This document shows positions 4,666 through 57,144 of a stretch of 64,000 bases of DNA, piece after piece. The notes beneath the pieces were generated by a model. That model worked only from the letters and a program-made list of their open reading frames with translations, was not told the origin of the DNA and made no database searches. Numbering within the stretch: the first letter of the stretch is position 1; every line of letters starts with the position of its first letter. Location: NCBI RefSeq assembly GCF_902713615.1, contig NC_052153.1:20723323-20787322 (forward strand). Reading direction: 5' to 3'. The position numbers were made by a program, and so were the translations under genes. Source of the stretch: Scyliorhinus canicula. Its lineage: Eukaryota.

Positions 4666-5526
4666 TTCATTGTGTATGAATCCTTTCAAGACCTTGTCCC
4701 TCCCTATCTCTGTATTCTCTGACAGCCACACACCCGCAACCCACTTAAGCCGAGTTCTCCTGCCTCTGGTCCTTTTGCATTTCCATTGTCTGCAATTTCC
4801 CAATGAGGGCCATACCTCCAGCTGCCTCAGCCCCTTGCTCCGGAATACTTGCCCAAAACCCCTCTGTCTCCATTAACAGCCTTCTTAAAACCTTTTTTCA
4901 CCTAGTCCTCATATCTCCTGCTTCGACTCGAGATCCATTTGAACCTGATTCAACCTCTGTAAGGTTCCTTGGGTCATTTTCCTATTGTCAGTAGGACCTG
5001 GTATGATTGTAAATCACTCTATTCCATCCCAGAGCCTTTCCGGATGCTGGATAATTGTTGATGTTCAGACTTTTTAAGGAACTTAAATGCGACCCCTCCC
5101 TCAATCAATCAAATTTTCTTTGAAGAAAATGAAAAAAAAGCGGAAACAATTAGAGTTGCAAATATTTTTAATATTTTTGCTATTACGAGCGCGATGACAG
5201 GAACTCGAGTCGTTTATATGGACCCGACTAGAATTATTTTTCTGTGGACTAGCGAATTAATTTAATGGATTTGTTTTCCCAGCACAGAGATACCCCCTGC
5301 CGTTCTACATTCTGGGAATTTGGGGAGAGCTGAGATCATCAAATTTTCCAAACATTGTGGATAAAAAGGAACCCTGCAGCAGCTCTGTGCTTTGCTTCCC
5401 AAAATGCACCGTGAGTAGATGAAAGTCATTGGTCGGTGGCTGAATTTATAAAATGTACCCTTTTGTCTGCTTTGAGTGATTCTGAATCAACAGCTATTGA
5501 ATGCTCCTGGGATACAGTGGGCATCA

Positions 5527-5855
5527 TTATTTGATTAAGCTGCAGGCTGTGGCGATTTCCCTTGTAGTGCAACTGCTATCACAGCATTGGTCAATAATTG
5601 GAATCTGCTTCTTGATCAATTTAGTTTGGGCGAGGGGCTTTGGGAAAACAAACTGCATTGTTTGGTCCCCCTCAACCTGAGGGCCAGCAACATGATAATC
5701 AGGTTCCATCTGCTCTTCCTGGGTGTAGTCATTGCCAAACGATTGCTGTCCATCATAAAACTCATAGTGCTGAAGCCTGTCATCGCCGAACACCCTCCGA
5801 ATTTGCTCTCTGTTCATCTTGAAGTAATCATCCCTGTTTGAGATCTCTGCGGGAT
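5527..5855 (-). CDS. Relaxin/insulin-like preprohormone, coding exon 2 (C peptide + A chain)
   Basis: Acceptor ttgtttctgttccag|ATCCC (AG at 5857-5856). The phase-1 join with exon 1 stays in frame (...PGY-N-PAEISNR...). Ends KK-QIPIIDQCCDSSCTTREIATACSLIK*, the insulin-superfamily A-chain motif CC-x3-C-x8-C after a dibasic site. Full product 165 aa. Confidence 0.93.
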
Positions 5856-6183
5856 CTGGAACAGAAACAAAGTTCCATCTGTGAACGCTCAATCAATGTA
5901 TCAGCATTTTAACTCCATGTTATCATCCCAAAATGGAACATTCACCTCAGAGAGAGTTTACCCATACTTACGTCGATTTAAGTGAACTTTTTTGCCGATT
6001 TAGTTTTTGCCTATTAACCATGCAAATTATTTTCTAATGTTGGTGTTTCTGTTTTTCTATCCTATAGGATGGGCTCAATGATCCCAGCTGGGAGCCTCAT
6101 GCCAGAGGAGTTTGGAGACATTTTGGGGCTGATTCACCAGCCACTGCTCCTGTTATTGTCTATTAAGGATTATTTAATAGGAA

Positions 6184-6385
6184 GGCAGCACGGTGGCACA
6201 GTGGTTAGCATTGCTGCCTCACGGAGTTGATGTCCCAGGTCCGATCCCAGCTCTGTGGAGCTTGTACATTCGCCTCGTGTCTGCGTGGCCTTCGCCCCCA
6301 CAACCCAAAGATGTGCAGGGTAGGTCGATTGGCCACGCAAAATTGTCCTTAATTGGAAGAAATGAATTGGGGACTCGAAATCTAT
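6184..6385 (+). mobile_element. HE1-type SINE (intronic)
   Basis: ggcagcacggtggcacagtggttagca head. Confidence 0.85.
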
Positions 6386-7414
6386 TTTTACAAAAGGATT
6401 ATTTAATAAGGAGGCAAATAGGGGGATTTAGTAATGGAAAAGGGCAGCAGGGAATGGGCATGAATGCAATATTTATGGGGAGAAATCTGCAGCAGGACCC
6501 GTGTGCAACCATCCTGTGCCAGGGAGCAGGAGGCGTGGGTTCTGTCAATGGGGAACATGGAGGGCTTGACTGAACGGCCACATGAAATAACCTTTTTACA
6601 AAGCAGAATCAAACACAGATTTACATCAATGAAATATTCATATGACATGCTGATTTATAATGCACAAACTTCGCTAATCATATACTTAACGTAACTGTGC
6701 TCCTTCATTCTTGTTTGATTTAGTTGGCACCTGATGACGCAAGAATTTTCAAATATTGAAATGGGGTCACACTGGGAAAGGGTTTGGGAAGCACCATGGT
6801 GCAAAACAAACTGGCTCTGCTCCTGATCTGCTATTGTGCCTTGGTGGAAAATCTTTCGTGAGGCTCCCACACATTTGGCAAAGGCATGGTGGTGCAGAGG
6901 GACAAATTCCCAGTTCTCATTGAGCTTTTCAGAACTATTATTATAGGTTTTGTTCTGACATGCTCTATAACTCAGTGATAATTTCAACTCACTTGACCTG
7001 CCAGGAACTGTGCAAGTAAACTTGCGCATTCCAGAAAGTGTGCTGAATTATAGGAAAATAACGTTTAAAGCCGGGTTTAATGTGTTCTCGGTGTGCCTCC
7101 AGAGCCATTTTGCGTTTCCAACTATTTGATTAGTGTTACTCACTCCGCTGGCTGGATTGCACCTCTTCTGTCGATCAGTCCAAGTCAAACTCAATCCTGA
7201 CCCATTACCTTGTGTTGTGAATTATTAACAATGCCAGGCAAGCTCCCAGTGAGACAGCTTGGGAAGGCCTTGCTGCAGATTCCTGGGGGGCTGCCACTGC
7301 AGGACTGTCGCTACAATACTAGAGGAGGTAGCAGAGACTGATCCCTTCAAAGGAAGCTGAGGAGAGGATGTCAGTACGAGACCCTCTTCCCAAATGTAGT
7401 CCTCAGTGACATTA

Positions 7415-7763
7415 CATAGAACATAGAACATAGAACAGTACAGCACAGAACAGGCCCTTCGGCCCTCGATGTTGTGCCGAGCAATGATCACCCCACTCAA
7501 ACACACGTATCCACCCTATACCCATAACCCAACAACCCCCCCCATAACCTTACTTTTTAGGACACTACGGGCAATTTAGCATGGCCAATCCACCTAACCC
7601 GCACATCTTTGGACTGTGGGAGGAAACCGGAGCACCCGGAGGAAACCCACGCACACACGGGGAGGATGTGCAGACTCCACACAGACAGTGACCCAGCCGG
7701 GAATCGAACCTGGGACCCTGGAGCTGTGAAGCATTTATGCTAACCACCATGCTACCGTGCTGC
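7415..7763 (-). mobile_element. HE1-type SINE, full length, young
   Basis: Head plus (TTCTATG)n tail; near-identical to 12288-12640. Confidence 0.9.
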
Positions 7764-8074
7764 CTGGCAGCATTGGGAAGGGGCAGTAACTGGAGAGAAT
7801 GTAAAGAACGTCTGATCATGTCCTCTCATGTGGGACATGCACAGATTCACTTTCAACAGGACAGAGGTCAGAGGTCAGAGACAGGCACCTTATGATTTAT
7901 TCCCCTCCCTTTTCCAAAATTGCTGAGTTCAACTCACTCAGCATTATCGGGGAACTAAACCTGGAATCTACTGTTCTCTGTAATTTACCTCCTTTGCTAC
8001 TGGGCCACATTATCTTTCTTTTAAGTTTAACATTTCACATCATTTAGACTCCAAGTGGGGGGGGGGTGGTCCAC

Positions 8075-8390
8075 AATAATAATAATAATCTTTATTACTG
8101 TCACAAGTAGGCTTACATTAACACTGCAATGAAGTTACTGTGAAAAGCCCTTAGTCGCCACACTCCGGCGCCTGTTCGGGTACACAGAGGGAGAATTAGG
8201 AATGTTCAATTCACCTAACAAGCACATCTTTCGGGAATTGCGGGAGGATACCGAAACACCTGGAGGGAACCCTCGCAGACACGGGGAGAATGTGCAAACT
8301 CCGCACAGATGGTGACCCAAGCGGGAACCGAACCTGGGACCCTGGCGCTGTGGCGCAACAGTGCTAACCACTGTGCCACCGTGCCACCCT
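8075..8390 (-). mobile_element. tRNA-derived SINE
   Basis: gggtggcacggtggcacagtggttagc head, (ATT)n tail. Confidence 0.8.
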
Positions 8391-8475
8391 AGCACGGACA
8401 GCCAGTGAATAATGCCACCAGCATGGGGTTTGATTCCCCCTTTGGCTGAAGTAGACTTGGGGCCCACCTCCCCAC

Positions 8476-8705
8476 NNNNNNNNNNNNNNNNNNNNNNNNN
8501 NNNNNNNNNNNNNNNNNNNNNNNNNNNNNNNNNNNNNNNNNNNNNNNNNNNNNNNNNNNNNNNNNNNNNNNNNNNNNNNNNNNNNNNNNNNNNNNNNNNN
8601 NNNNNNNNNNNNNNNNNNNNNNNNNNNNNNNNNNNNNNNNNNNNNNNNNNNNNNNNNNNNNNNNNNNNNNNNNNNNNNNNNNNNNNNNNNNNNNNNNNNN
8701 NNNNN
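8476..8705. other. Assembly gap (230 N) inside the intron of the relaxin-like gene
   Basis: Run of N. Confidence 0.99.
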
Positions 8706-9062
8706 GGACAATCATTAAACTAAAACTATAGTGTAAAGTAACAGAATTATGCAGCTCATTTCAGAATACAAGTAATTACAATAGATTACAAAATGTAGGT
8801 CTGCCTAATTTACAGAATAGAAATGAAAGGCTGTGGTTCCATGACTTTTAAATAATGGAGGATGCTACCTGAAGGTTCAACCCCTGCATGAATATGTGAA
8901 GACTGACATTCCTTCATGATAATGAAGCTGATAAGGTCATTGTATTCCTGATGCATTGATTTATAAAATCACATCATGTTTTAATTGGAATGACAACAAT
9001 GCATTTTCGGAATCACTGACTATTTCTCTACCTTGGTCAATAGAAGGGAGGTCAATACTCAC

Positions 9063-9231
9063 TATATCCGGGATGGAGGGCTCTCTGGCTAATGCCCCTG
9101 CAGATAGTTACCAGTATTTTGACAAAACTGTGACCACAGAGCTTTGTGAATACCAGACCAGGGTTTAATGTAGAATCTGCAAAGAGTGGCAGCGAGAGCC
9201 CAGTAATCAGGACGAACACCAGACACTTCAT
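9063..9231 (-). CDS. Relaxin/insulin-like preprohormone, coding exon 1 (signal peptide + B chain + start of C peptide)
   Basis: Manual translation from ATG at 9231: MKCLVFVLITGLSLPLFA-DSTLNPGLVFTKLCGHSFVKILVTICRGISQR-ALHPGY. Hydrophobic leader, B-chain motif LCG with C-x11-C spacing, ends at the canonical donor A|GTGAGT (9062-9057), phase 1 (169 nt). Confidence 0.93.
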
Positions 9232-9304
9232 TGCACTTCGTAAACCCGAATAGCTGCTAATTCCTCTCTAGCTCGGACTTCCAGGTTTATCTGTTCCCTG
9301 CCCA

Positions 9305-9311
9305 TTTTATA
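9305..9311 (-). promoter_or_regulatory. TATA box of the relaxin-like gene
   Basis: TATAAAA on the minus strand about 75 nt upstream of the ATG, with an AGATAA (GATA-type) hexamer at 9287-9292. Confidence 0.7.
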
Positions 9312-9805: not shown

Positions 9806-12800
9806 GATCGCGATCTACTGGCCTCATTGCGAACTTGCTCAAGTGAAACGAGGCCGGTGAATAACGGGAGAGGCCAAAAGCGAGAAGCACGCCAGGCGGC
9901 AAACCAGGATGCAACCGGCCCGCTCCTGTAGGTGAAATCGGGATCTCACTGTAGAGAGGTGAGAAACCAATTATCACCACTTAAGCCCATTTCCATATGA
10001 CTAATGAGAGCCACCCTTTATCCAACGCCCTCCCGTCAGATAATGGCCTCCCCAGCAAGTGCCGATTAGTACTCCTTTTGAAAAATGTGAACTGGGCGGA
10101 AGGGCTTCTGTGGAGAGCTGAGGAGGTGAGAAGCCATCTTGGCTCACAGGCAAAGAGTCTGGGGGTGCTGGGCTTGCTGCCCCTGTACTCAGCGGAGGGG
10201 GTGGGGGACCATCGGCTGAGGGTAGGTTGCCATCGGAAGGTGGGGGGGGGTAACCGGGAGGGGGGGGGGGGCAACCACTCATGGCACCACCATGCCAAAC
10301 CCTGGATTGTGTGTACCCATTCTGGGATCAACCCTTGCCTCTGCCCGTCTGCCTCAATGACCACCCATAACCCCCGCTGACTGCCGAGGCCTCTGGCCAT
10401 GCAGCTGACATCTAGGGAATTGGCTGCCATGGTTAAGTGAGCACTTCACTCAACCTAAGTGGATTCCCATGGGTGGGCCAGCCATGTAGCATGTGGGAAT
10501 GATTGCCTAGCATCCCAATCAGACCGTGATGCCTGCACACTGCAGCAGCCAACGTCCGAACATCCAGGAGATGGAACACAGCTCTGGCTGGAGGGTGGGT
10601 GAGTGCCACGGGGAGGGGGCCAGTGCCCTGTTAAGTTGACGTTGTGAGCGGGTGTCGGGGTACAGGGCGCGTTGCCCGCTGTGACTGGGAGTGTGTGGGC
10701 AGGGCGTTCCGGGTAGGGGGTGGGGAGGATCAGTAAGGGAATGGCGGGTCCCGGGGTGGGAGCCACCGCTATTTGTCAATGTTCCCAATGCCTTAAAGAT
10801 GTTAAATGCTATGTCAGGGATGTTAGACTCAGAGGTTGCCCCAATGGTGCTGGTGCTGCACGATGTGACCAGACACAGGAGAAGGCGTCAGCAACAGTGT
10901 CTGCAGATGTTCGAGGCAATGGCCCATGTGCCGGATTCCACCCTGAGGATCCAGGTGGCCATCAACCGAGGGAGGGACCAAGAGGATGAGTCCCACTACG
11001 GCCCAGGGTGTACAGGCATCGCTGGTCCTTTGAACAAACGACGGACAGTGCGTGCAGCAGGAGGCTCCGCCTCAAAAAGGAGACGGTGCGACACCTGTGC
11101 CATATAGTCACGGACTTGGCACCACACGGAGGAGGAGGAGGACACATGCTCCCAGTGGCCGTCGAGGTCACTGCAGCCCTGAACGTTTCTGCCATGTGAT
11201 CATTTCAGGGCTCTAGCGGGGACCTGTGTGGACCTCACAGGCCACAGCCCACAGGTGCATCCGGCAGGTCACGAATGCCCTGTATACCCGGGCGGTAGAC
11301 TACACTGTCTTTGACATGGAACAGGCTCAGCAAGATGCCTGAGCTGCAGGTTTCTCTGCCATCGCCGGGATACCCGAGGTCCGGGGAGTCATAGATGTCA
11401 TGCATGATGCCTGTACGGCGGCCGGAGACCAAAGTGGAGACTCGCTACAACGAGGCCATGCAGCCACCCGGGCTGTCCATGAGCAGTGCATCGGACTCCT
11501 CAAGATGCGGTTCCAATGCCTCGACAGCTCTGGTGGTGGACTCCAGTACACCGTCCAGAGGGTCGTCTGCTTTGTGGTGGTCTTCTGTGCCCTCCACGAC
11601 CTGGCACAGCAGCGGGACGACAAGCTGGAAGTTGGTGATGAGGAGCGTGTGGCCATCTCCGAGGCGGAGGAGGATGAGGATGATGAGGAGGCTCCAGACC
11701 GGCAGGGGCTGGAGGACAAGGCCGGGGAGGAACCTGAGACCCAGGCGGAGGCTGAGGACATGTGGCAGTGATGAGTGTCCAGCAAGCCCGGAGGGCCAAG
11801 GAGGCTCTCATATTCGCTCGCTTTGCCTTGGGCGTGGCCTGGTCCGTCTTCACAACCTTACCCACCCACCACCCTCATTTACATCCTCCCAGGATATGTG
11901 TCACATCACTCCAGGGTGCTGGGACAGTGTTTTGGCACTGTCAGCGGGTCAGTGTTGAGGACAGGGGAGGTGATGATAACCTGCAGAGAGCTAAGCGCTG
12001 GTGCTCCTCAATCTATGCCATAGTCTGACCCCTGCCTGTCTGCTGAATGCTCGCTCACACCCATCACCTGCACGTAATAATGCATTGGGGAAAAAACTGA
12101 CAGAGGTTTCCTCCTGGTTGTGTACAAGGATGTTTATTGTTCAATACAAGTCCTCTCTCTCCCAATGGGGCCGCCCCACACCCTCCCACCGCCCCAAATA
12201 TCCACTCTCCACACCCACTTTCACCCCCTACCTGCCCCATTTCCCCCCCCCCCCCACCCCCACACTTCCAGTGCCCTCAGTGATAAAACATAGAACATAG
12301 AACATAGAGCAGTACAGCACAGAACAGGCCCTTCGGCCCTCAATGTTGTGCCGAGCCATGATCACCCTACTCAAACCCACGTATCCACCCTATACCCGTA
12401 ACCCAACAACCCCCCCCTTAACCTTACTTTTATTAGGACACTACGGGCAATTTAGCATGGCCAATCCACCTAACCCGCACATCTTTGGACTGTGGGAGGA
12501 AACCGGAGCACCCGGAGGAAACCCACGCACACAGGGGGAGGACGTGCAGACTCCACACAGACAGTGACCCAGCCGGGAATCGAACCTGGGACCCTGGAGC
12601 TGTGAAGCATTTATGCTAACCACCATGCTACCCTGCTGCCCCCCTGATCCTCAATGTGCTTGGCCCTCCGAGCTCTACCACTATGTCGAGGTGTCTCCCC
12701 AGGATTCACAGCTGAGGTGCAGACAACCAGGTGCTTACCTCATCCCATGGTCTTCGATGTTCCTGGTGGATGTCCTCTGAGGGTCCTGGGGCTGGAGGCC

Positions 12801-24292: not shown

Positions 24293-25127
24293 GAAAACTT
24301 CCAGATCTGCTGACAGGATCTGTGCTGGAAAGGTTAAACCCTGCCACACTTCTCTAATATCCCTTTTGTAGCCTCTGTATCCTCATGGCGTTTCCCCTAT
24401 CTAACGCGTATTGTCGGCAAAATTGAAAACGTTGCCCCTCATCTAAATCATTGATATAGATTGTCCCTAACTGAGCCCCAAATGCCAATCCTTGCAATCA
24501 TCCACAAGCTTGTCAGCCTGAAAATGATCAATTTATTCCTACTCTCTGTTTCCTGGCCATTAACCAGTCCTCAATCCTTATCAGATATATTGCTCCCAGT
24601 CCCATCAATTTGTGTTTGGTGTCCTCACCTCTTGTGCAATCCCTTATCAAATGCTTTCTGAAAATCCAAACATACTACATCCACTGGTTTCCCTATTGCT
24701 GAACCTTTAAAAACCACTAACAGATCTGTCAAACAGGATTTCCTTTTCACAAATCCAATTTGACTGCTGAATTATACTACACATTTTCAGTGCCAAGTTC
24801 CAATGTCACATATAGTCAGACCTGGCATTTCCCTGCCCCTGATGTCAGATTAAGTGGTCTGCAGTTTCCTGTTTGGCCTGTCCCTCTTATAAAGAGCAGG
24901 GTCACATTTTCAAACTCACAATCATTGAGAAACAATAGAATCTAGAGAACCCTATCGAACTCTAAAATCCTCCCAATCCTAAGGAGTTCCATTCTTTTTG
25001 CCAGAATTTTTACAAGCATCTCCTTTAAATCTTGACTATAGGTCGACCTAGCGTATAATACAACCCCATTTTCCAGCCCCAAATATCATGCTTTTGGGTG
25101 GTGTATAAGTCTGCCATATTCTGTATG

Positions 25128-26458
25128 ATGTGTTGGGTAAAAGATACGATTTATAATCATCTAGATAGGAATAATATGATTAGGGATAGTCAGCATGGTT
25201 TTGTGAAGGGTAGGTCATGCCTCACAAACCTTATCGAGTTCTTTGAGAAGGTGACTGAACAGGTAGACGAGGGTAGAGCAGTTGATGTGGTGTATATGGA
25301 TTTCAGTAAAGCGTTTGATAAGGTTCCCCACGGTCGGCTATTGCAGAAAATACGGAGGCTGGGGATTGAGGGTGATTTAGAGATGTGGATCAGAAATTGG
25401 CTAGTTGAAAGAAGACAGAGAGTGGTAGTTGATGGGAAATATTCAGAATGGAGTTCAGTTACGAGTGGCGTACCACAAGGATCTGTTCTGGGGCCGTTGC
25501 TGTTTGTCATTTTTATAAATGACCTAGAGGAGGGCGCAGAAGGATGGGTGAGTAAATTTGCAGACGACACTAAAGTCGGTGGAGTTGTAGACAGTCCGGA
25601 AGGATGTTGCAAGTTACAGAGGGATATAGATAAGCTGCAGAGCTGGGATGAGAGGTGGCAAATGGAGTTTAATGTGGAGAAGTGTGAGGTGATTCACTTT
25701 GGAAAGAATAACAGGAATGCGGAATATTTGGCTAATGGTAAAATTCTTGGTAGTGTGGATGAGCAGAGGGATCTCGGTGTCCATGTACATAGATCCCTGA
25801 AAGTTGCCACCCAGGTTTATAGGGTTGTGAAGAAGGCCTATGGTGTGTTAGCCTTTATTGGTAGAGGGATTGAGTTCCGGAGCCATGAGGTCATGTTGCA
25901 GTTGTACAAAACTCTAGTACGGCCGCATTTGGAGTATTGCGTACAGTTCTGGTCGCCTCATTATAGGAAGGACGTGGAAGCTTTGGAACGGGTGCAGAGG
26001 AGATTTACCAGGATGTTGCCTGGTGTGGAGGGAAAATCGTATGAGGAAAGGCTGATGGACTTGAGGTTGTTTTCGTTAGAGAGAAGAAGGTTAAGAGGTG
26101 ACTTAATAGAGGCATACAAAATGATCAGAGGGTTAGATAAGGTGGACAGCGAGAGCCTTCTCCCACGGATGGAGGTGGCTAGCACGAGGGGACATAGCCT
26201 TAAATTGAGGGGTAATAGATAGGACAGAGGTCAGAGGTGGGTTTTTTACGCAAAGAGTGGTGAGGCCGTGGAATGCCCTACCTGCAACAGTAGTGAACTC
26301 GACAACATTGAGGGCATTTAAAAATTTATTGGATAAGCATATGGATGATAAGGGCATAGTGTAGGTTAGATGGCCTTTAGTTTTTTTTTCCATGTCGGTG
26401 CAACATCGAGGGCCGAAGGGCCTGTACTGCGCTGTATCGTTCTATGTTCTATGTTCTA
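25128..26458 (+). mobile_element. Young 5'-truncated CR1 LINE (reverse transcriptase)
   Basis: 374-aa ORF with QHGFVKGRSCLTNL, YMDFSKAFDKV, GVPQGSVLGP and KFADD. Frameshift near 26220; (TTCTATG)n tail. Confidence 0.97.
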
Positions 26459-32319: not shown

Positions 32320-33815
32320 CATCCCAAGTATTTTGGCAAATCCAAGTTGAGGAATCCAGCAGAAGGCTCTGCATCTTCAACATGTCTTTTAGCAGGTTCT
32401 GCTGCAACCGAATGCAATTTGGCATCATCTCAGCATCAGAGATTTTCCATTGAATCATGGAACAGATGATTGAGGGAATAGAAGGGGTTCGTGTCTACGT
32501 TGACAATATCATAATCTGGGCCACAACCCCAGAGGAACATGTGTCACGACTCAAGAAAGTATCCGACGCATACATGAACATGGCCTCAAGCTAAATAGGT
32601 CCAAGTGCTGTTTTGGGACATCCACGCTGAAGTTCCTGGGCGATCAGATTTTGCGACATGTTGTGCGCCTGGACACAGACAAAATTAAAGTCATCGAGGC
32701 AATGAAAGTCCCCGAGGACAAGAAGGCAGTACTGCGCTTCCTGGGAATGGTCAATTTCCTTGGCAAGTTCATCCTGAATTTGGCCACGCACACCACGGCC
32801 CTACACAACCTGGTAAAAAAATCAACCGCCTTTGAGTGGAACATGGAGCACCGAACAATGTGGCTGGAGCTGAAAGCCAAGCTCACCACTGGACCCGTCC
32901 TTACATTATTTGACGCAGACCGAGAGTCCAAGATATCCACAGATGTGAGTCAGGATGGCATTGGGGCGGTGTTGCTTCAAAGAGACGACACGTCATCCTG
33001 GGTACCGGTAGCATACGCGTCACGGGCAATGACACCCATTGAGACCAGATATGCGCAGATTGTGAAGGAGTGTATAGGTCTTCTCACCGGCATCCTCAAA
33101 TTTCATGATTATGTCTACGGCTTGCCAACATTTTCTTTTGCGACGGATCATAATCCTCTGGTCCACGTCATCCAAAAGGACCTGAACAACATGACTTGTT
33201 TGCAGAGAATTCTGCTCAAACTCCAGAGGTATGATTTCAATTTGGTGTACACACCTAGCAAGGAACTCATCATCGCCAATGCATTGTCCCGGCTCCGTCA
33301 CCTCACCCAGTGAACCACTGGAGATCATCCAGCACAGGTACAACTGTGTGCAAGCACTCTCCCGACAACAGATGAGAAGATCGTTCTCATCTGAGAAGAG
33401 GCGGCCAAAGACCCCCTGTTGCAGCGAGTCATCCACAACCTCAGCAATGGCTGGCAGAAAGGGCAATGCCCTCAATTCTATAACGTCAAGGACAACCTGA
33501 CGCTAATCGATGGCATCCTGCTCAAGCTGGACAGGATAGTCATCCCGCTACGTCTCCAGAGCATGGTACTGCGGCAGATTCATGAGGGACTCCTGGGCGT
33601 AGAAAAGTGCAGATGCAGGGCCCGGCAACAACCAGGACATCACGGACATTGTCCTGAACTGCGAAACCTGTCAGAGGTTCTAACCAACGCAGATCACGGA
33701 GACGCTCCAACCACATGACCTAGAGACCTCTCTGTGGTCCAAGGTTGGCATTGACCTATTCCACGCGAATGGTCGCGACTATATCTTAATCATCGATTAC
33801 TTTTCTAACTATCCT
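32320..33815 (+). mobile_element. Gypsy pol fragment (RT, RNase H, integrase)
   Basis: LRFLGMVNFLGKFI, TDVSQDGIGAVLLQ, VAYASRAM, TDHNPL and IDLFH..LIIDYFS. Confidence 0.92.
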
Positions 33816-41462: not shown

Positions 41463-41558
41463 AAACATTTCAATATAAATTACATCTAAACTTTCACCTT
41501 GTGACTATTGCATAATTATTTCTCAAACCTAGTCAATGGAACAGATTTTAATACTTAT

Positions 41559-41710
41559 CATTTAACAATGAATGAGAGCTCTTCAGACATCCAAGAAGCA
41601 AATCGGCAAAATATTATGTCTAAACGATTTGTGGATATCTCGTCAAGGTTTGCTCCACCAGTGCTCACTTTAAGCTCCAGGAGGCTAAGTAGAAAGAATA
41701 TAAATTGTAA
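41559..41710 (-). pseudogene. Relaxin-like paralog, decayed exon 1 (copy 3)
   Basis: Reads ..FIFFLLSLLELKVSTGGANLDEISTN.., with AACCTTGACGAGATATCCACAAA matching the NPG(L/E)(V/I)F(T/L)K codons of copies 1 and 2, and AGAGCTCTC matching AGAGCCCTC. The donor position reads ATAAGT and the first 43 intron nt are 30/43 identical to the intact gene. The LCG codons are missing and the 5' end abuts a Gypsy LTR. Confidence 0.65.
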
Positions 41711-51913: not shown

Positions 51914-52086
51914 TCAGGAATTTAAGCTGCAGGTTTGTATAGAAGACAGCAAGCAACAGGTTTCACAACAGTTTTAAAGGTATGTTGAAGTTTTCTTCCA
52001 AATTTCTTGCAATAAAATATATTTTTTCACTTCAACGATCAATAAAGTATACTTTTTTACTTGGATACAATGGTTCCGTTGTCTTT
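51914..52086 (-). pseudogene. Relaxin-like paralog, exon 2 pseudogene (A chain)
   Basis: Pyrimidine tract plus acceptor ttgtttacag|AA, phase 1, in frame to ...QEIWKK-TSTYL*NCCETCCLLSSIQTCSLNS*. KK-x7-CC spacing is as in the intact gene and CCTGCAGCTTAA is shared. Premature TAA at 51974-51976 and one codon missing between the last two cysteines. Confidence 0.75.
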
Positions 52087-53210: not shown

Positions 53211-54253
53211 GTCTGTACACTGAGGGATCTGTACACTCTGAGGGGTCTGTACACTCTGAGGGACATGTACACTCTGAGGGACATGTACACTCTGAGGGGT
53301 CTGTACACTCTGAGGAGTCTGTACACTCTGAGGGGTCTGTACACTCTGAGGGACATGTACACTCTGAGGGACATGTACACTCTGAGGGGTCTGTACACTC
53401 TGAGGAGTCTGTACACTCTGAGGGGTCTGTACACTCTGAGGAGTCTGTACACTCTGAGGGGCCTGTACACTCTGAGGGACATGTACACTCTGAGGGGTCT
53501 GTACACTCTGAGGGGTCTGTACACTCTGAGGAGTCTGTACACTCTGAGGTGTCTGTACACTCTGAGGGGCCTGTACACTCTGAGTGGTCTGTACACTCTG
53601 AGGAGTCTGTACACTCAGAGGGGCATGTACACTGTGAGGGGCATGTACACTGTGAGGGGCCTGTACACTCTGAGGGGGTCTGTACACTCTGAGGGGTCTG
53701 TACACTCTGAGGGGTCTGTACACTCTGAGGGACATGTACACTCTGAGGGACATGTACACTCTGAGGGGTCTGTACACTCTGAGGGGTCTGTATACTCTGA
53801 AGGGCCTGTACACTCTGAAGGGTCTGTACACTCGGAGGGGTCTGTACACTCTGAGGGGTCTGTACACTCTGAGGGGTCTGTACACTCTGAGGGGTCTGTA
53901 CACTCTGAGGGGTCTGTACACTCTGAGGGGTCTGTACACTCCGAGGGGTCTGTACACTCCGAGGGGTCTGTACACTCTGAGGGGCATGTACACTCTGAAG
54001 GGTCTGTACACTCTAAGTGGTCTGTATACTCTGAAGGGCCTGTACACTCTGAGTGGTCTGTACACTCGGAGGGGTCTGTACACTCGGAGGGGTCTGTACA
54101 CTCTGAGGGGCCTGTACACTGTGAGGGATCTGTGCACTCTGAGGGATCTGTACACTCTGAGGGATCTGTACACTCTGAGGGATCTGTACACTCTGAGGGA
54201 TCTGTACACTCTGAGGGGTCTGTATACTCTGAGGGACCTGTACACTCTGAGGG
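53211..54253. repeat. 18-bp minisatellite (TCTGTACACTCTGAGGGG)n, about 58 copies
   Basis: Directly visible tandem array with variant units (GGGACATGTAC, GGAGTCTGTAC, GGGCCTGTAC) and a 1-nt insertion near 53675. Confidence 0.97.
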
Positions 54254-54436
54254 ATGAGTAACTAATTCGCCCCCTCTCCCGGCAACATGTTGCCGAGCTC
54301 TTCTCTCATGAACCCTATGCTGATGTCAAAGCCTCAGTGATTTTAAGACACCAGGTGAAATAATGGGAGAGGAATAGGTAAACCTAAAAGTGAAAGCAAG
54401 AGACGAAATAGCGGAGATTCAGAACTGTGAAGCGAA

Positions 54437-54607
54437 TTGAAGTACTTGGTGTTCATTCTGGTAATCAGACAGTTCCTGCTCTTTACAGATTCTGCTGAAG
54501 TTGACCCTGGTGAGATATTCTTAAAGCTCTGATTTCATAAACCTGCGATACAAATATTGCGTATCTGCAGGGTCAGCGGTTGGAGATCACTCCAGCTGCA
54601 GCATATA
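54437..54607 (+). pseudogene. Relaxin-like paralog, exon 1 pseudogene (copy 2)
   Basis: Translates LKYLVFILVIRQFLLFTDSAEVDPGEIFLKL*FHKPAIQILRICRVSGWRSLQLQHI then GTGAGT. The start codon is TTG, the first B-chain Cys is TGA (54530-54532), the donor is phase 0, and the TATA box is degraded. The 5'UTR (54355-54436) and intron (54608-54652, 54855-55140) align to the reverse complement of 9232-9312, 9018-9062 and 8710-8995. Confidence 0.9.
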
Positions 54608-55344
54608 GTGAGTGTTGACCTACCTTCTATTGACCAAGACAGAGAGATAGTCGTTGGTGCCGTGCAAGTTGGGCGGTATCCTCCGTTTCACCGGCAGCGC
54701 ACTCACGCCCACGGATTTACCGACGGCGTGGGGGTACCCACAATGGAAAACCCATTGGCCGGCTGCCGGGAAGGAGGATCCCACTGTTGGCGGGAGCGTG
54801 CCGTGCCAGAAAATGGGTGTGGCGGGACCGAGAATCCCACCCGTCACGTTTACATGTCATTCCTGTTAAAACGTGATGCAATTTTATATATCAATACATC
54901 AGGAATATAATGACCTTATCAGCTTAATTATCACGTAGGAATGTTTTCATATATTCATGCAGGGGTTGAACCATCAGGCAGCATCCTCCATTATTTGAGA
55001 GTCACAGAACCATGGCCTTTGATTTCTAGGTTAATTAGGTAGATCTACATTTTGCAATCTATTGTAATTATTTGTATTCTGAAATGAGTTGCATTGTGCA
55101 ATCATCCTGTTACTTTCTACTTCTGTTTTAATTTAATGATCATCCAGAGTTATGTCATGAATAATGATTACTTGTTTTATACATGTCATCAAGCCATGAT
55201 GATTTTTCAGTAAACCAGTCATCTATCGGTCCATCCATCCATCTCTCTGTCTATCCCGTGACTTCACTATGGGGCAGGGTGGGGGTGCTACCTCAGGCAA
55301 AGGGGAATCATTGGCATTATTCTAAGCCACACACTAGTCGTCTG

Positions 55345-56565
55345 AGTCGTAGAGTTTTATAGCACAGAAAGAGGCCCTTCGGCCCATCGTGTCTGTGACG
55401 GCCATCAAGCACCTATCTTCTCTAATCCTATTTTCCAGCACTTGGTTTGAAGCCTTGTGTGCTATGGTGTTTCCATGCTCATCTAAATGCTTCTGAAATG
55501 CTGTGAGGGTTCTGTCTCTATCACCCTTTCAGGCAGTGAGTTTTTCCTTAAATCCTCTCTGAATCTCCTGTCCATTACCTTAAGTTGAGCCCTCAACTAA
55601 GGGGAAAGGTCTCTTCTTATCTATCCTGGTATCTGATGACCCAAGAATGATCAAATATTGAAATGGGATCACATTTTAGAAGAGTTTGAGACATGATACA
55701 AAACAAACAGGGTCCGCTTCTGTCGCTCTACTGTGCACAGTGGCACAGTGATTAGCGCCGCTGCCTCACAGCGCCAGGGACCCGAGTTCAATTCCGGCCT
55801 TGAGTGAGTGTGTGGAGTTTGTACATTCTCTGCATGTCTGCGTGGGTTTCCTCCGGGTGCTGCTGTTTCCTCCCACAATCTAAAGATGTGCAGGTTAGGT
55901 GGATTGGCCATGCTAAATTGTCCCTTAGTGTCCAAAGATATGTTGGTTAGGTGGGTTTACGGGGATAGGACGGGGGGAGTGAGTCAAAGTGCGGTGCTCT
56001 TTCAGAGGGTGAGTGCCGACTTGATGGGCTGAATGGCCTCCTTCTGCACTGTAGTGATTCTGAGATTGCGTACTTTGGTGGAAAATCTTCAGTGAGGTTT
56101 CCACACATCTGGTAAAGTTATAATGGCGCTGAGGGAACAACTCCCTGCAAATTCTCATTGAGTCTTTCAGCACTATTATTAAAAGCAACATCCTGGTGAA
56201 TCTCCTCTGCACCCTTTCTGCTGCAATCAGCTCCTTCCTATTGTGTGGTGACCAGAACTGCCCACAATACTCTAGCTGTGGATATATGAGCAGTTTATAT
56301 AGCTCCATCACACCCTCTCTGCTCTTGTATTCTTTGTGTCGGCTAATAAATCCTGTCTAATCCTGTTAGAATTTTATACGTTTCTACGAGACCCCCTCTC
56401 ACTTTTCTAAACTGCAATGAATATAATCCTAACTGACTTAGTCTCTCCTCGTACAACAGTCCCCTCATCCCAGGAACCAGCCTGGCAAACCTTCGCTGCA
56501 CTCCCTCCACAGCAAGAACATCCTTCCCCAGATAAGAACATCAAAACTGCACACAATACTCCAGG
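55345..56565 (-). mobile_element. CR1 3' fragments (55345-55628, 56184-56565) and an HE1 SINE (55733-56065, +)
   Basis: CR1 tail and LEYCGQFWSPH..ERVQRRFTRML motif; SINE head cacagtggcacagtgattagc. Confidence 0.85.
55632..56180. other. Paralogous intron segment homologous to 6731-6943, split by a SINE
   Basis: ctgatgac(g/c)caagaat..tcaaatattgaaatggg and ttggtggaaaatctt..gtgagg...ccacacat..ttctcattgag..tttcag..ctattatt match 6731-6943 in direct orientation. Confidence 0.75.
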
Positions 56566-57144
56566 TATCACAGAGCCTTGAAGTTTCCAGGTTCAGTCCT
56601 CAGTCAGAACTCAGCCAATTAGTGAGATACAATTGGCCTCAACAACTTTGGAAAAGAGAGGGAAAAAGTTCCTGCCCCTGTAACTCCTGTTGAAAGTGAG
56701 TCTGTACATGTCCCACATGAGGATATGATCAAATTTTTTTGCATCCACCCCATTTGCTACCCCTTCCTGGGTCTGCCATGTAATGACACTGAGGACCACA
56801 ATGGAGAAGAGGGCTGCGTACTGACATTCTCTCCTCAGCTTCTGTGGTAATGCGGCCCCTTTAAGGGGCGAGCCCTCACAGTCCATGTGACCAGCTTGGG
56901 GCCAATCGTGATGGAGCGCACAAACCCTGACCAATGGAGAGAAAGCTTGGGGCACTTGGAGCAGGAGCCCAGACAGTGTGCACCCTGGAACCAGAGCATT
57001 AAGACCTAGTCAATGTTGCTCTGTGCCTGGATATTGTTGTCTTTGCCTATTGTTAATAAACCTCCTTTATTGGTGCTGGATGTCTCCAATTTATTATTTT
57101 GATCCACCACTTTGATCGATCGCTTATCCTCAGTGGTTTGGGAT

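Follow-up and report, generated by a model that had tools for sequence, protein, structure and literature searches.

Structure of the gene

The window analysed here is a 64,000-nucleotide (64-kb) stretch of the Scyliorhinus canicula genome (assembly GCF_902713615.1, contig NC_052153.1, positions 20,723,323 to 20,787,322), and all coordinates given below are counted from its first letter. By direct reading of the sequence, an intact gene for an insulin/relaxin-type prepropeptide was found on the minus strand between positions 5527 and 9311, with two coding exons. This two-exon gene is apparently unannotated.

The gene is preceded by a TATAAAA box (9305-9311, minus strand) about 75 nucleotides (nt) 5' of the start codon, which would serve as promoter element and place the start of transcription near 9280. 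The coding part of exon 1 (9063-9231, minus strand) begins with the ATG at 9231-9229, comprises 56 codons and base 1 of codon 57, and thus ends in phase 1, immediately followed by the donor GTGAGT at 9062-9057. The acceptor AG at 5857-5856, preceded by a pyrimidine tract, opens the coding part of exon 2 (5527-5855, minus strand), which supplies the last two bases of codon 57, a further 108 codons and the stop codon TAA at 5529-5527. With the predicted splice junction 9063/5855, the spliced reading has 498 nt, that is, 165 codons plus stop. Another AG at 5880-5879 was considered as an alternative acceptor and rejected, since it is out of frame and meets a stop codon. A candidate polyadenylation signal, ATTAAA, is located about 260 nt past the stop codon (5261-5266, minus strand).

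These readings agree with a preliminary description of the locus, which had reported the TATA box, the ATG, an 18-residue hydrophobic leader, a GT-AG phase-1 intron, a KK site and a 165-residue product with six correctly spaced cysteines. That description had also remarked that exon 1 is invisible in the open reading frame (ORF) track; exon 1 was indeed missed there because its ORF, counted from the ATG, is merely 59 amino acids (aa) long.

Predicted precursor and processing

Residues 1-18 (9178-9231, minus strand) form a putative signal peptide with the hydrophobic core LVFVLITGLSLPLF (grand average of hydropathy 2.0), and the small residue at position -1 suggests that the leader is cleaved after Ala18. 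The B chain, residues 19-50 (9082-9177, minus strand), contains the arrangement C32-G-x10-C44, with Gly33 following the first B-domain cysteine, and an H-x3-K-x2-V cassette. It ends in R-x4-R, which may be a prohormone convertase site. The connecting peptide (residues 51-137) has 87 aa and is acidic, with an isoelectric point of about 4.7 when scored on residues 52-137, close to the acidic C peptide of about 89 aa that had been proposed. A dibasic KK site (residues 138-139; 5608-5613, minus strand) marks the junction between the connecting peptide and the A chain, seven residues before the CC pair. The A chain itself, residues 140-165 (QIPIIDQCCDSSCTTREIATACSLIK; 5530-5607, minus strand), shows the pattern CC-x3-C-x8-C, and its opening reads IIDQCC. 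This cysteine pattern occurs a single time in a six-frame scan of the window. Cysteines are present at residue 3, in the leader, and at residues 32, 44, 147, 148, 152 and 161, and a sequence scan of the 165-aa precursor detected no N-x-S/T glycosylation site.

From these features a conventional course of maturation can be proposed. The 18-aa leader would direct the precursor to the secretory pathway, where the B and A domains would adopt the insulin fold, secured by three disulfides among Cys32, Cys44, Cys147, Cys148, Cys152 and Cys161. Prohormone convertases would then cut after R-G-I-S-Q-R, between the B chain and the connecting peptide, and after KK, between the connecting peptide and the A chain; for the KK site this expectation follows from the established specificity of these enzymes. 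Removal of the acidic connecting peptide of about 87 aa would leave a hormone of two chains, B with about 31-32 aa and A with 26 aa; the N-terminal Gln of the latter could cyclise.

Assignment to the insulin/relaxin superfamily

Each exon was searched separately, and the scores given here are per exon. Exon 2 matched the Pfam Insulin family (PF00049) with an E value of 0.0016 and 19.8 bits, against a cut-off of 23, over profile positions 45-81 of 81, which correspond to the A-chain half. Among solved structures in the PDB, the best match of exon 1 was the B chain of human INSL3 (E 0.009, 12 of 18 positions identical), and INSL3 was the only family found with this exon. Exon 2 matched the A domains of IGF-I (best, E 0.09), IGF-II, insulin and Drosophila DILP2, and with neither exon did the PDB searches give a relaxin chain at E 10 or better. 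In the ESM Atlas, the nearest neighbours of exon 2 were Insulin clusters (0.92), which made up all ten best named matches, and the nearest cluster of exon 1 was likewise of the Insulin family (0.89).

The arrangement of the encoded protein points in the same direction. The B domain has C-x11-C with a glycine after its first cysteine, the A domain has CC-x3-C-x8-C, and the precursor displays the leader, the B-connecting-A order, the basic site before the A chain and a phase-1 intron in the connecting region. A phase-1 intron within the connecting peptide is typical of the insulin/relaxin superfamily. On the strength of these sequence features, together with the Pfam, PDB and ESM Atlas matches of the separate exons, we assign the gene to this superfamily, as the preliminary description had done.

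A word-indexed search of 5.8 billion protein clusters found no close relatives of either exon, and exon 1 gave nothing real in a full HMMER (phmmer) scan of 1.84 billion representatives. Two phmmer matches to exon 1 were long tandem-repeat proteins in which many weak repeats sum up, and they were considered spurious. One of them is a 3101-aa protein with a repeat of about 57 aa containing LCGHASVK...C; its 59 bits in total to the B-chain exon come from 34 weak repeats, and it was rejected as a homologue. Both the protein and any close orthologue are absent from the protein collections searched, a result that does not extend to unannotated orthologues in other genomes, and the protein is undescribed in that sense, so that the earlier suggestion of an undescribed hormone holds at the level of the protein databases, that is, for both exons among the 5.8 billion clusters and for exon 1 among the 1.84 billion representatives.

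Paralogous remnants and their divergence

The window also contains a second, decayed copy of the 5' half of the gene. This remnant, copy 2, was detected with tblastn (E 0.001) and nhmmer (E 2e-31) at 54362-55140 on the plus strand, inverted with respect to the intact gene, and covers promoter region, exon 1 and the 5' portion of the intron. Its lesions include the change of ATG to TTG, the replacement of the first B-chain cysteine codon by TGA, the replacement of the glycine by Phe and a 2-nt insertion before the donor, and the counterpart of the TATA box is a degenerate GAAATAA. Copy 2 nevertheless retains the C-x11-C spacing, the donor GTGAGT and a C-x4-W motif (C-R-V-S-G-W), at the site where the intact gene reads C-R-G-I-S-Q, its Trp being replaced by Gln. 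A continuation of copy 2 (56685-56842, plus strand) matches the intron segments 7861-7776 and 7417-7353 with 81-86% identity, these sequences being present in two to three copies in the window. Past 56842 no more unique colinear homology to the intact gene was found, and no second exon 2 was detected in the window at the DNA level; copy 2 is either a partial duplicate or a copy that lost its 3' half.

A possible third remnant of exon 1 lies at 41518-41653 on the minus strand. It is heavily decayed, with a C-R-F-A-S-W motif, similarity in the donor flank and a weak nhmmer match (E 0.45), and copy 2 is the only robust remnant. An A-chain-like reading was also observed at 51923-51997 (minus strand; tblastn E 4), with KK, seven residues and CC, but it carries a stop codon and the wrong cysteine spacing. 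Directly upstream of the dead copy 2 there is a minisatellite (53211-54253) with 58 copies of the 18-bp unit GTCTGTACACTCTGAGGG at 90% matches, the translation of which yields spurious Pfam matches to Bactofilin, FapA and MinC. Judged from these copies, the gene sits in a small birth-and-death cluster in which at least one partial duplicate has decayed.

The divergence between the intact gene and copy 2 is uneven along the sequence. Exon 1 is 65% identical between the two copies and the adjoining intron 85% (Fisher p = 3e-7), the B helix between the two cysteines is 51% identical and the non-coding 5' region 64%. The number of synonymous substitutions per site (dS) in exon 1 is 0.61, against an intron distance of 0.16, and its ratio of non-synonymous to synonymous substitutions (dN/dS) is 0.71. 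Positive selection on the B helix was considered and rejected as the explanation, since the 5' non-coding region is equally diverged and dS is inflated like dN. A mosaic history, for example a later gene conversion of the intron tract, would better explain this pattern, as these distances suggest. The comparison with copy 2 gives no clear evidence for or against constraint.

Transcription and functional status

Words (k-mers) of the exon-1 region were present only in four RNA runs, all from one sample, at shares of 0.13-0.26, values that do not resolve which bases are covered; in about 20 other RNA runs of the species the share was 0.00. The predicted exon alone would give a share of about 0.33 of the words of this region. 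The four positive runs have just 39-145 Mb of contigs, too little to contain a quarter of a random genomic stretch. These k-mer shares in one sample fit tissue-restricted transcription, of which they give a hint only. In the region 5400-8400 about 14% of the words were found in many RNA runs. The reading of this share as exon 2 plus untranslated region was discarded, because the same runs have 0.00 for exon 1 and the intron holds multi-copy repeats resembling short interspersed nuclear elements (SINE-like repeats); the 14% is probably repeat sequence.

Taken together, these data lead us to regard the locus as a genuine two-exon gene that encodes a secreted prepropeptide of the insulin/relaxin superfamily, is intact and probably functions. 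The argument for function is based on the comparison of the two copies, because the intact one is free of lesions over its 498 nt while four or more disabling lesions have accumulated in 170 nt of the remnant. On the intact side, the start codon and leader, the glycine and the six cysteines, KK, both splice sites and the TATA box have all been retained. Several observations weigh against this interpretation. The homology scores are individually marginal, the Pfam score of exon 2 lies under the curated cut-off and exon 1 alone has no Pfam match; no orthologue was found in the protein databases searched; the two exons are separated by an assembly gap (8476-8705); the dN/dS of 0.71 between exon 1 and copy 2 gives no clear sign of purifying selection; and Gln at the B24/B27 equivalent and Ala at the A19 equivalent occupy positions of the core or the receptor surface that are usually aromatic.

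As to what such a functional gene would represent, two possibilities appear to us at roughly even odds: that it is the very strongly diverged orthologue of an ancestral gene of the relaxin family (INSL3 or RLN), or that it is an additional, lineage-specific paralogue. It is possible, if doubtful, that it encodes a lineage-specific hormone that arose by local duplication, is orthologous neither to RLN, INSL3, RLN3 or INSL5, the four ancestral genes of the relaxin family, nor to insulin/IGF, and carries a rebuilt receptor surface. Under such a history the INSL3-like H-x3-K-x2-V cassette, the loss of the Trp and the insulin-like start of the A chain would imply a receptor or a signalling mode differing from that of the parent gene.

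We consider it unlikely that the gene is intact in appearance only, that is, a pseudogene, young or unexpressed, that belongs to a decaying cluster and has so far escaped a hit in its frame. Such an origin would suit the dead neighbouring copies, the dN/dS measured against the remnant, the lack of a similar protein in the databases searched and of exon 1 in most RNA runs, as well as the replacement of the relaxin cassette and of residues that are usually conserved, namely the Trp/Phe after the last B-chain cysteine and the Tyr before the last A-chain cysteine. However, 35% of the exon 1 sites differ between the copies, and over this divergence all of the disabling lesions (at least four in 170 nt) fell on the remnant and none on the 498 nt of the intact copy. 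In addition, RNA-type runs of one sample do contain words of the exon-1 region.

Branch of origin

Several defining motifs of the known branches are missing from the functional gene that we propose. The relaxin B-chain motif RxxxRxxI/V is absent, the corresponding residues reading H-S-F-V-K-I-L-V, and so is C-x4-W. Of the residues expected for INSL3, His, Lys and Val are either retained or conservatively exchanged, and Arg B20 is changed to Thr and Trp B27 to Gln. The insulin/IGF pattern is not found either, with Gln and Ala at the B24 and A19 equivalents and a connecting peptide of 87 aa. The preliminary description had seen no resemblance of the mature chains to insulin, IGF, RLN3-like peptides, INSL5 or the shark relaxins. 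To say that they resemble no known member goes too far, given the INSL3-like B helix, the insulin/IGF-like start of the A chain and the C-x4-W of the remnants.

C-x4-W is a signature of the relaxin family, and insulin and IGF have Phe at this position. An origin in the relaxin/INSL branch is favoured because the remnants keep C-x4-W and the connecting peptide is 87 aa long, and descent from this branch is, on sequence grounds, most likely. The position of the phase-1 intron within the connecting peptide accords with this origin, as does the promoter, exon 1 and donor similarity that ties the intact gene to copy 2.

Descent from the insulin/IGF branch, by which the locus would be an additional, divergent insulin-like gene whose product acts through a receptor tyrosine kinase, seems improbable to us. 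The A domain does have its best PDB matches among IGF-I, IGF-II and insulin and none among the relaxins, its IIDQCC start resembles GIVEQCC/GIVDECC, the B12-equivalent Val is kept, and the Gly of the relaxin-type CCxxGC is absent. On the other hand, the B chain matches INSL3 only, the Trp motif survives in the remnants, the connecting peptide is long, and the B24-26 and A19 equivalents lack the aromatics on which insulin-receptor binding depends. In its second half (C-T-x-x-E-I-x-x-x-C) the A chain conforms to the relaxin-family pattern.

Classical agonism at RXFP1 or RXFP3 is not expected of the product, because both the RxxxRxxI/V cassette and the Trp have been lost and the A chain starts like that of insulin/IGF. 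Our best guess from the sequence is that the receptor would be an RXFP2-like LGR receptor.

Intron, assembly gap and linkage of the exons

The single phase-1 intron of about 3.2 kb (5856-9062, minus strand) interrupts the connecting-peptide region and contains both a run of Ns and SINE-like repeats, for example at 7401-7764. The N gap, 8476-8705, is of estimated length and wholly intronic, beginning 357 nt past the donor and ending 2.6 kb before the acceptor. Since it sits inside the intron, no reading frame crosses it.

The continuity of the gene over the gap can be examined by comparison with copy 2, where the paralogous stretch 54362-56842 is free of gaps. On the exon-1 side the segments 9306-9018 and 8995-8711, and on the exon-2 side the segments 7861-7776 and 7417-7353, are colinear with this stretch in one order and one orientation, and these segments are of low copy number (two or three copies in the window). 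Because this colinearity of low-copy DNA extends to both flanks of the gap and the paralogue has none, the order and orientation across the gap are supported. The comparison thus supports the scaffold join across 8476-8705, although the gap itself may hide extra sequence.

Segments 7861-7776 and 7417-7353 are adjacent in the paralogue and are split in the intact gene by the SINE-like insertion at 7401-7764. Its insertion took place after the duplication, given that the interrupted segment is continuous in the paralogue. It is 96% identical to 12275-12640, about 5 kb away, and is young. A core of about 200 bp shared by these SINE-like elements is found in at least 16 copies in the window.

An assembly chimera, in which exons of different copies were joined over the N gap so that the 165-aa protein does not correspond to one gene, is in our judgement very improbable. 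It would be compatible with the gap of estimated length between the exons and with the presence in the window of at least one other copy of exon 1 that has no exon 2. Against it stand the colinear low-copy DNA with the same orientation on both sides of the gap, the matching phases of donor and acceptor, and the fact that just a single intact B-chain exon and a single A-chain exon are present in the window, both on one strand and correctly ordered. Finally, we give next to no credence to the idea that ORFs and cysteine motifs fell into this arrangement by chance in repeat-rich DNA, since, marginal as the scores are, with E values of 0.0016 and 0.009 uncorrected for the more than 130 ORFs of at least 90 aa in the window, the two exons represent the two halves of a single domain family, correctly ordered on one strand, with consensus splice sites in matching phase, an ATG and leader in front and KK seven residues before CC, independent methods give family matches for each half, and the paralogue conserves exon 1 and its donor.

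Genomic neighbourhood

Relaxin/INSL genes in the broad sense are linked to a JAK-family paralogon, with RLN/INSL6 close to JAK2, INSL3 to JAK3 and INSL5 to JAK1. No tyrosine-kinase motif, JAK-type ones included, was found in any frame of the 64-kb window. Pfam searches with 20 ORFs, consisting of the longest ones in the window and those flanking the gene, detected no domain of a host gene and gave retroelement domains and low-complexity matches only, and no Rfam family was found in the window. The retroelement ORFs are located at 25098-26222 and 32651-33313, both on the plus strand (reverse transcriptase RVT_1, E 3e-27; RT-RNaseH, E 2e-26). Apart from the hormone gene, the recognised content of the window consists of these retroelement ORFs, the SINE-like repeats and the minisatellite.

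Significance and comparison with known hormones

If expressed, the gene extends the species' insulin/relaxin repertoire by an unannotated peptide hormone. The co-evolution of ligands and receptors that followed the vertebrate genome duplications has a textbook example in the relaxin-family peptides and the RXFP receptors. A member without RxxxRxxI and without the Trp, alongside dead sister copies in which the Trp persists, would offer a natural experiment on the rewiring of receptor specificity. The locus could also identify the gene behind the relaxin-like peptides that were purified decades ago from elasmobranch reproductive tracts. In addition, it illustrates how prohormone genes with two exons, the first of them short, are missed by catalogues built from ORFs and by those built from annotation alike.

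Among the hormones with which the product can be compared, insulin and the IGFs share the cysteine spacing of the A domain, which is identical, and the start of this domain (IIDQCCDSSC here, IVDECCFRSC in IGF-I, E 0.09). They differ in the connecting region, where an 87-aa peptide with processing sites takes the place of a C-peptide of about 30 aa or of the uncleaved C domain of IGF. The D and E domains of IGF have no counterpart here, and the aromatics at the B24-26 and A19 equivalents are missing.

Human INSL3 (PDB 2H8B, 2K6T, 2K6U) is the closest match of the B chain (KLCGHSFVKILVTICRG aligned with KLCGHHFVRALVRVCGG, E 0.009). Both have an H-x3-(R/K)-x2-V cassette instead of RxxxRxxI, in the form H-x3-R-x2-V in mammalian INSL3 and H-x3-K-x2-V here, and both are two-chain peptides encoded by a two-exon gene with a removable connecting peptide, the processing being predicted in the present case. 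The differences are Thr in place of Arg B20 and Gln in place of Trp B27, two residues that are important for the binding of INSL3 to RXFP2 (PMC11122137), and an A chain for which the PDB search gave no INSL3 match. Non-mammalian INSL3 proteins, that of Callorhinchus included, have Arg followed by Glu/Asp where mammals have His-His, and the likeness in the His to human INSL3 is on this account probably convergent (PMC11122137). Trp B27 has also been lost in the Insl3 of zebrafish and Callorhinchus (PMC11122137).

The relaxins (RLN1/2, RLN3 and the peptide-sequenced ones of sharks and skates) resemble the present gene in their long connecting peptide, in the dibasic site that precedes the A chain, in the Gln with which that chain starts and in belonging to a locally duplicating gene cluster, and their C-x4-W is found in the paralogous remnants. 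In contrast, the intact gene has no RxxxRxxI/V, which is the defining relaxin motif (PMC551602), and it has Gln in place of the Trp and Ser in place of the Gly of CCxxGC. INSL4 and INSL6, fast-evolving orphan members of the relaxin cluster, likewise arose by local duplication and lost the relaxin motif, and rapid evolution or positive selection has been discussed for them, duplicated relaxin-family genes being known to evolve rapidly (PMC551602). Both are specific to mammals or primates, so that the likeness lies in the evolutionary mode and not in orthology.

Our literature search turned up no survey of the relaxin-family genes of chondrichthyans. A relaxin-like molecule of Atlantic stingray males is described as glycosylated and as having a B chain without the relaxin motif (Bullesbach, Schwabe and Lacy 1997, as reported in PMC551602). 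Going by that description, the stingray molecule and the present precursor share the absence of the motif and differ in glycosylation, since the latter has no N-x-S/T site. Set beside the Scyliorhinus gene by description only, the stingray molecule is the obvious candidate orthologue.

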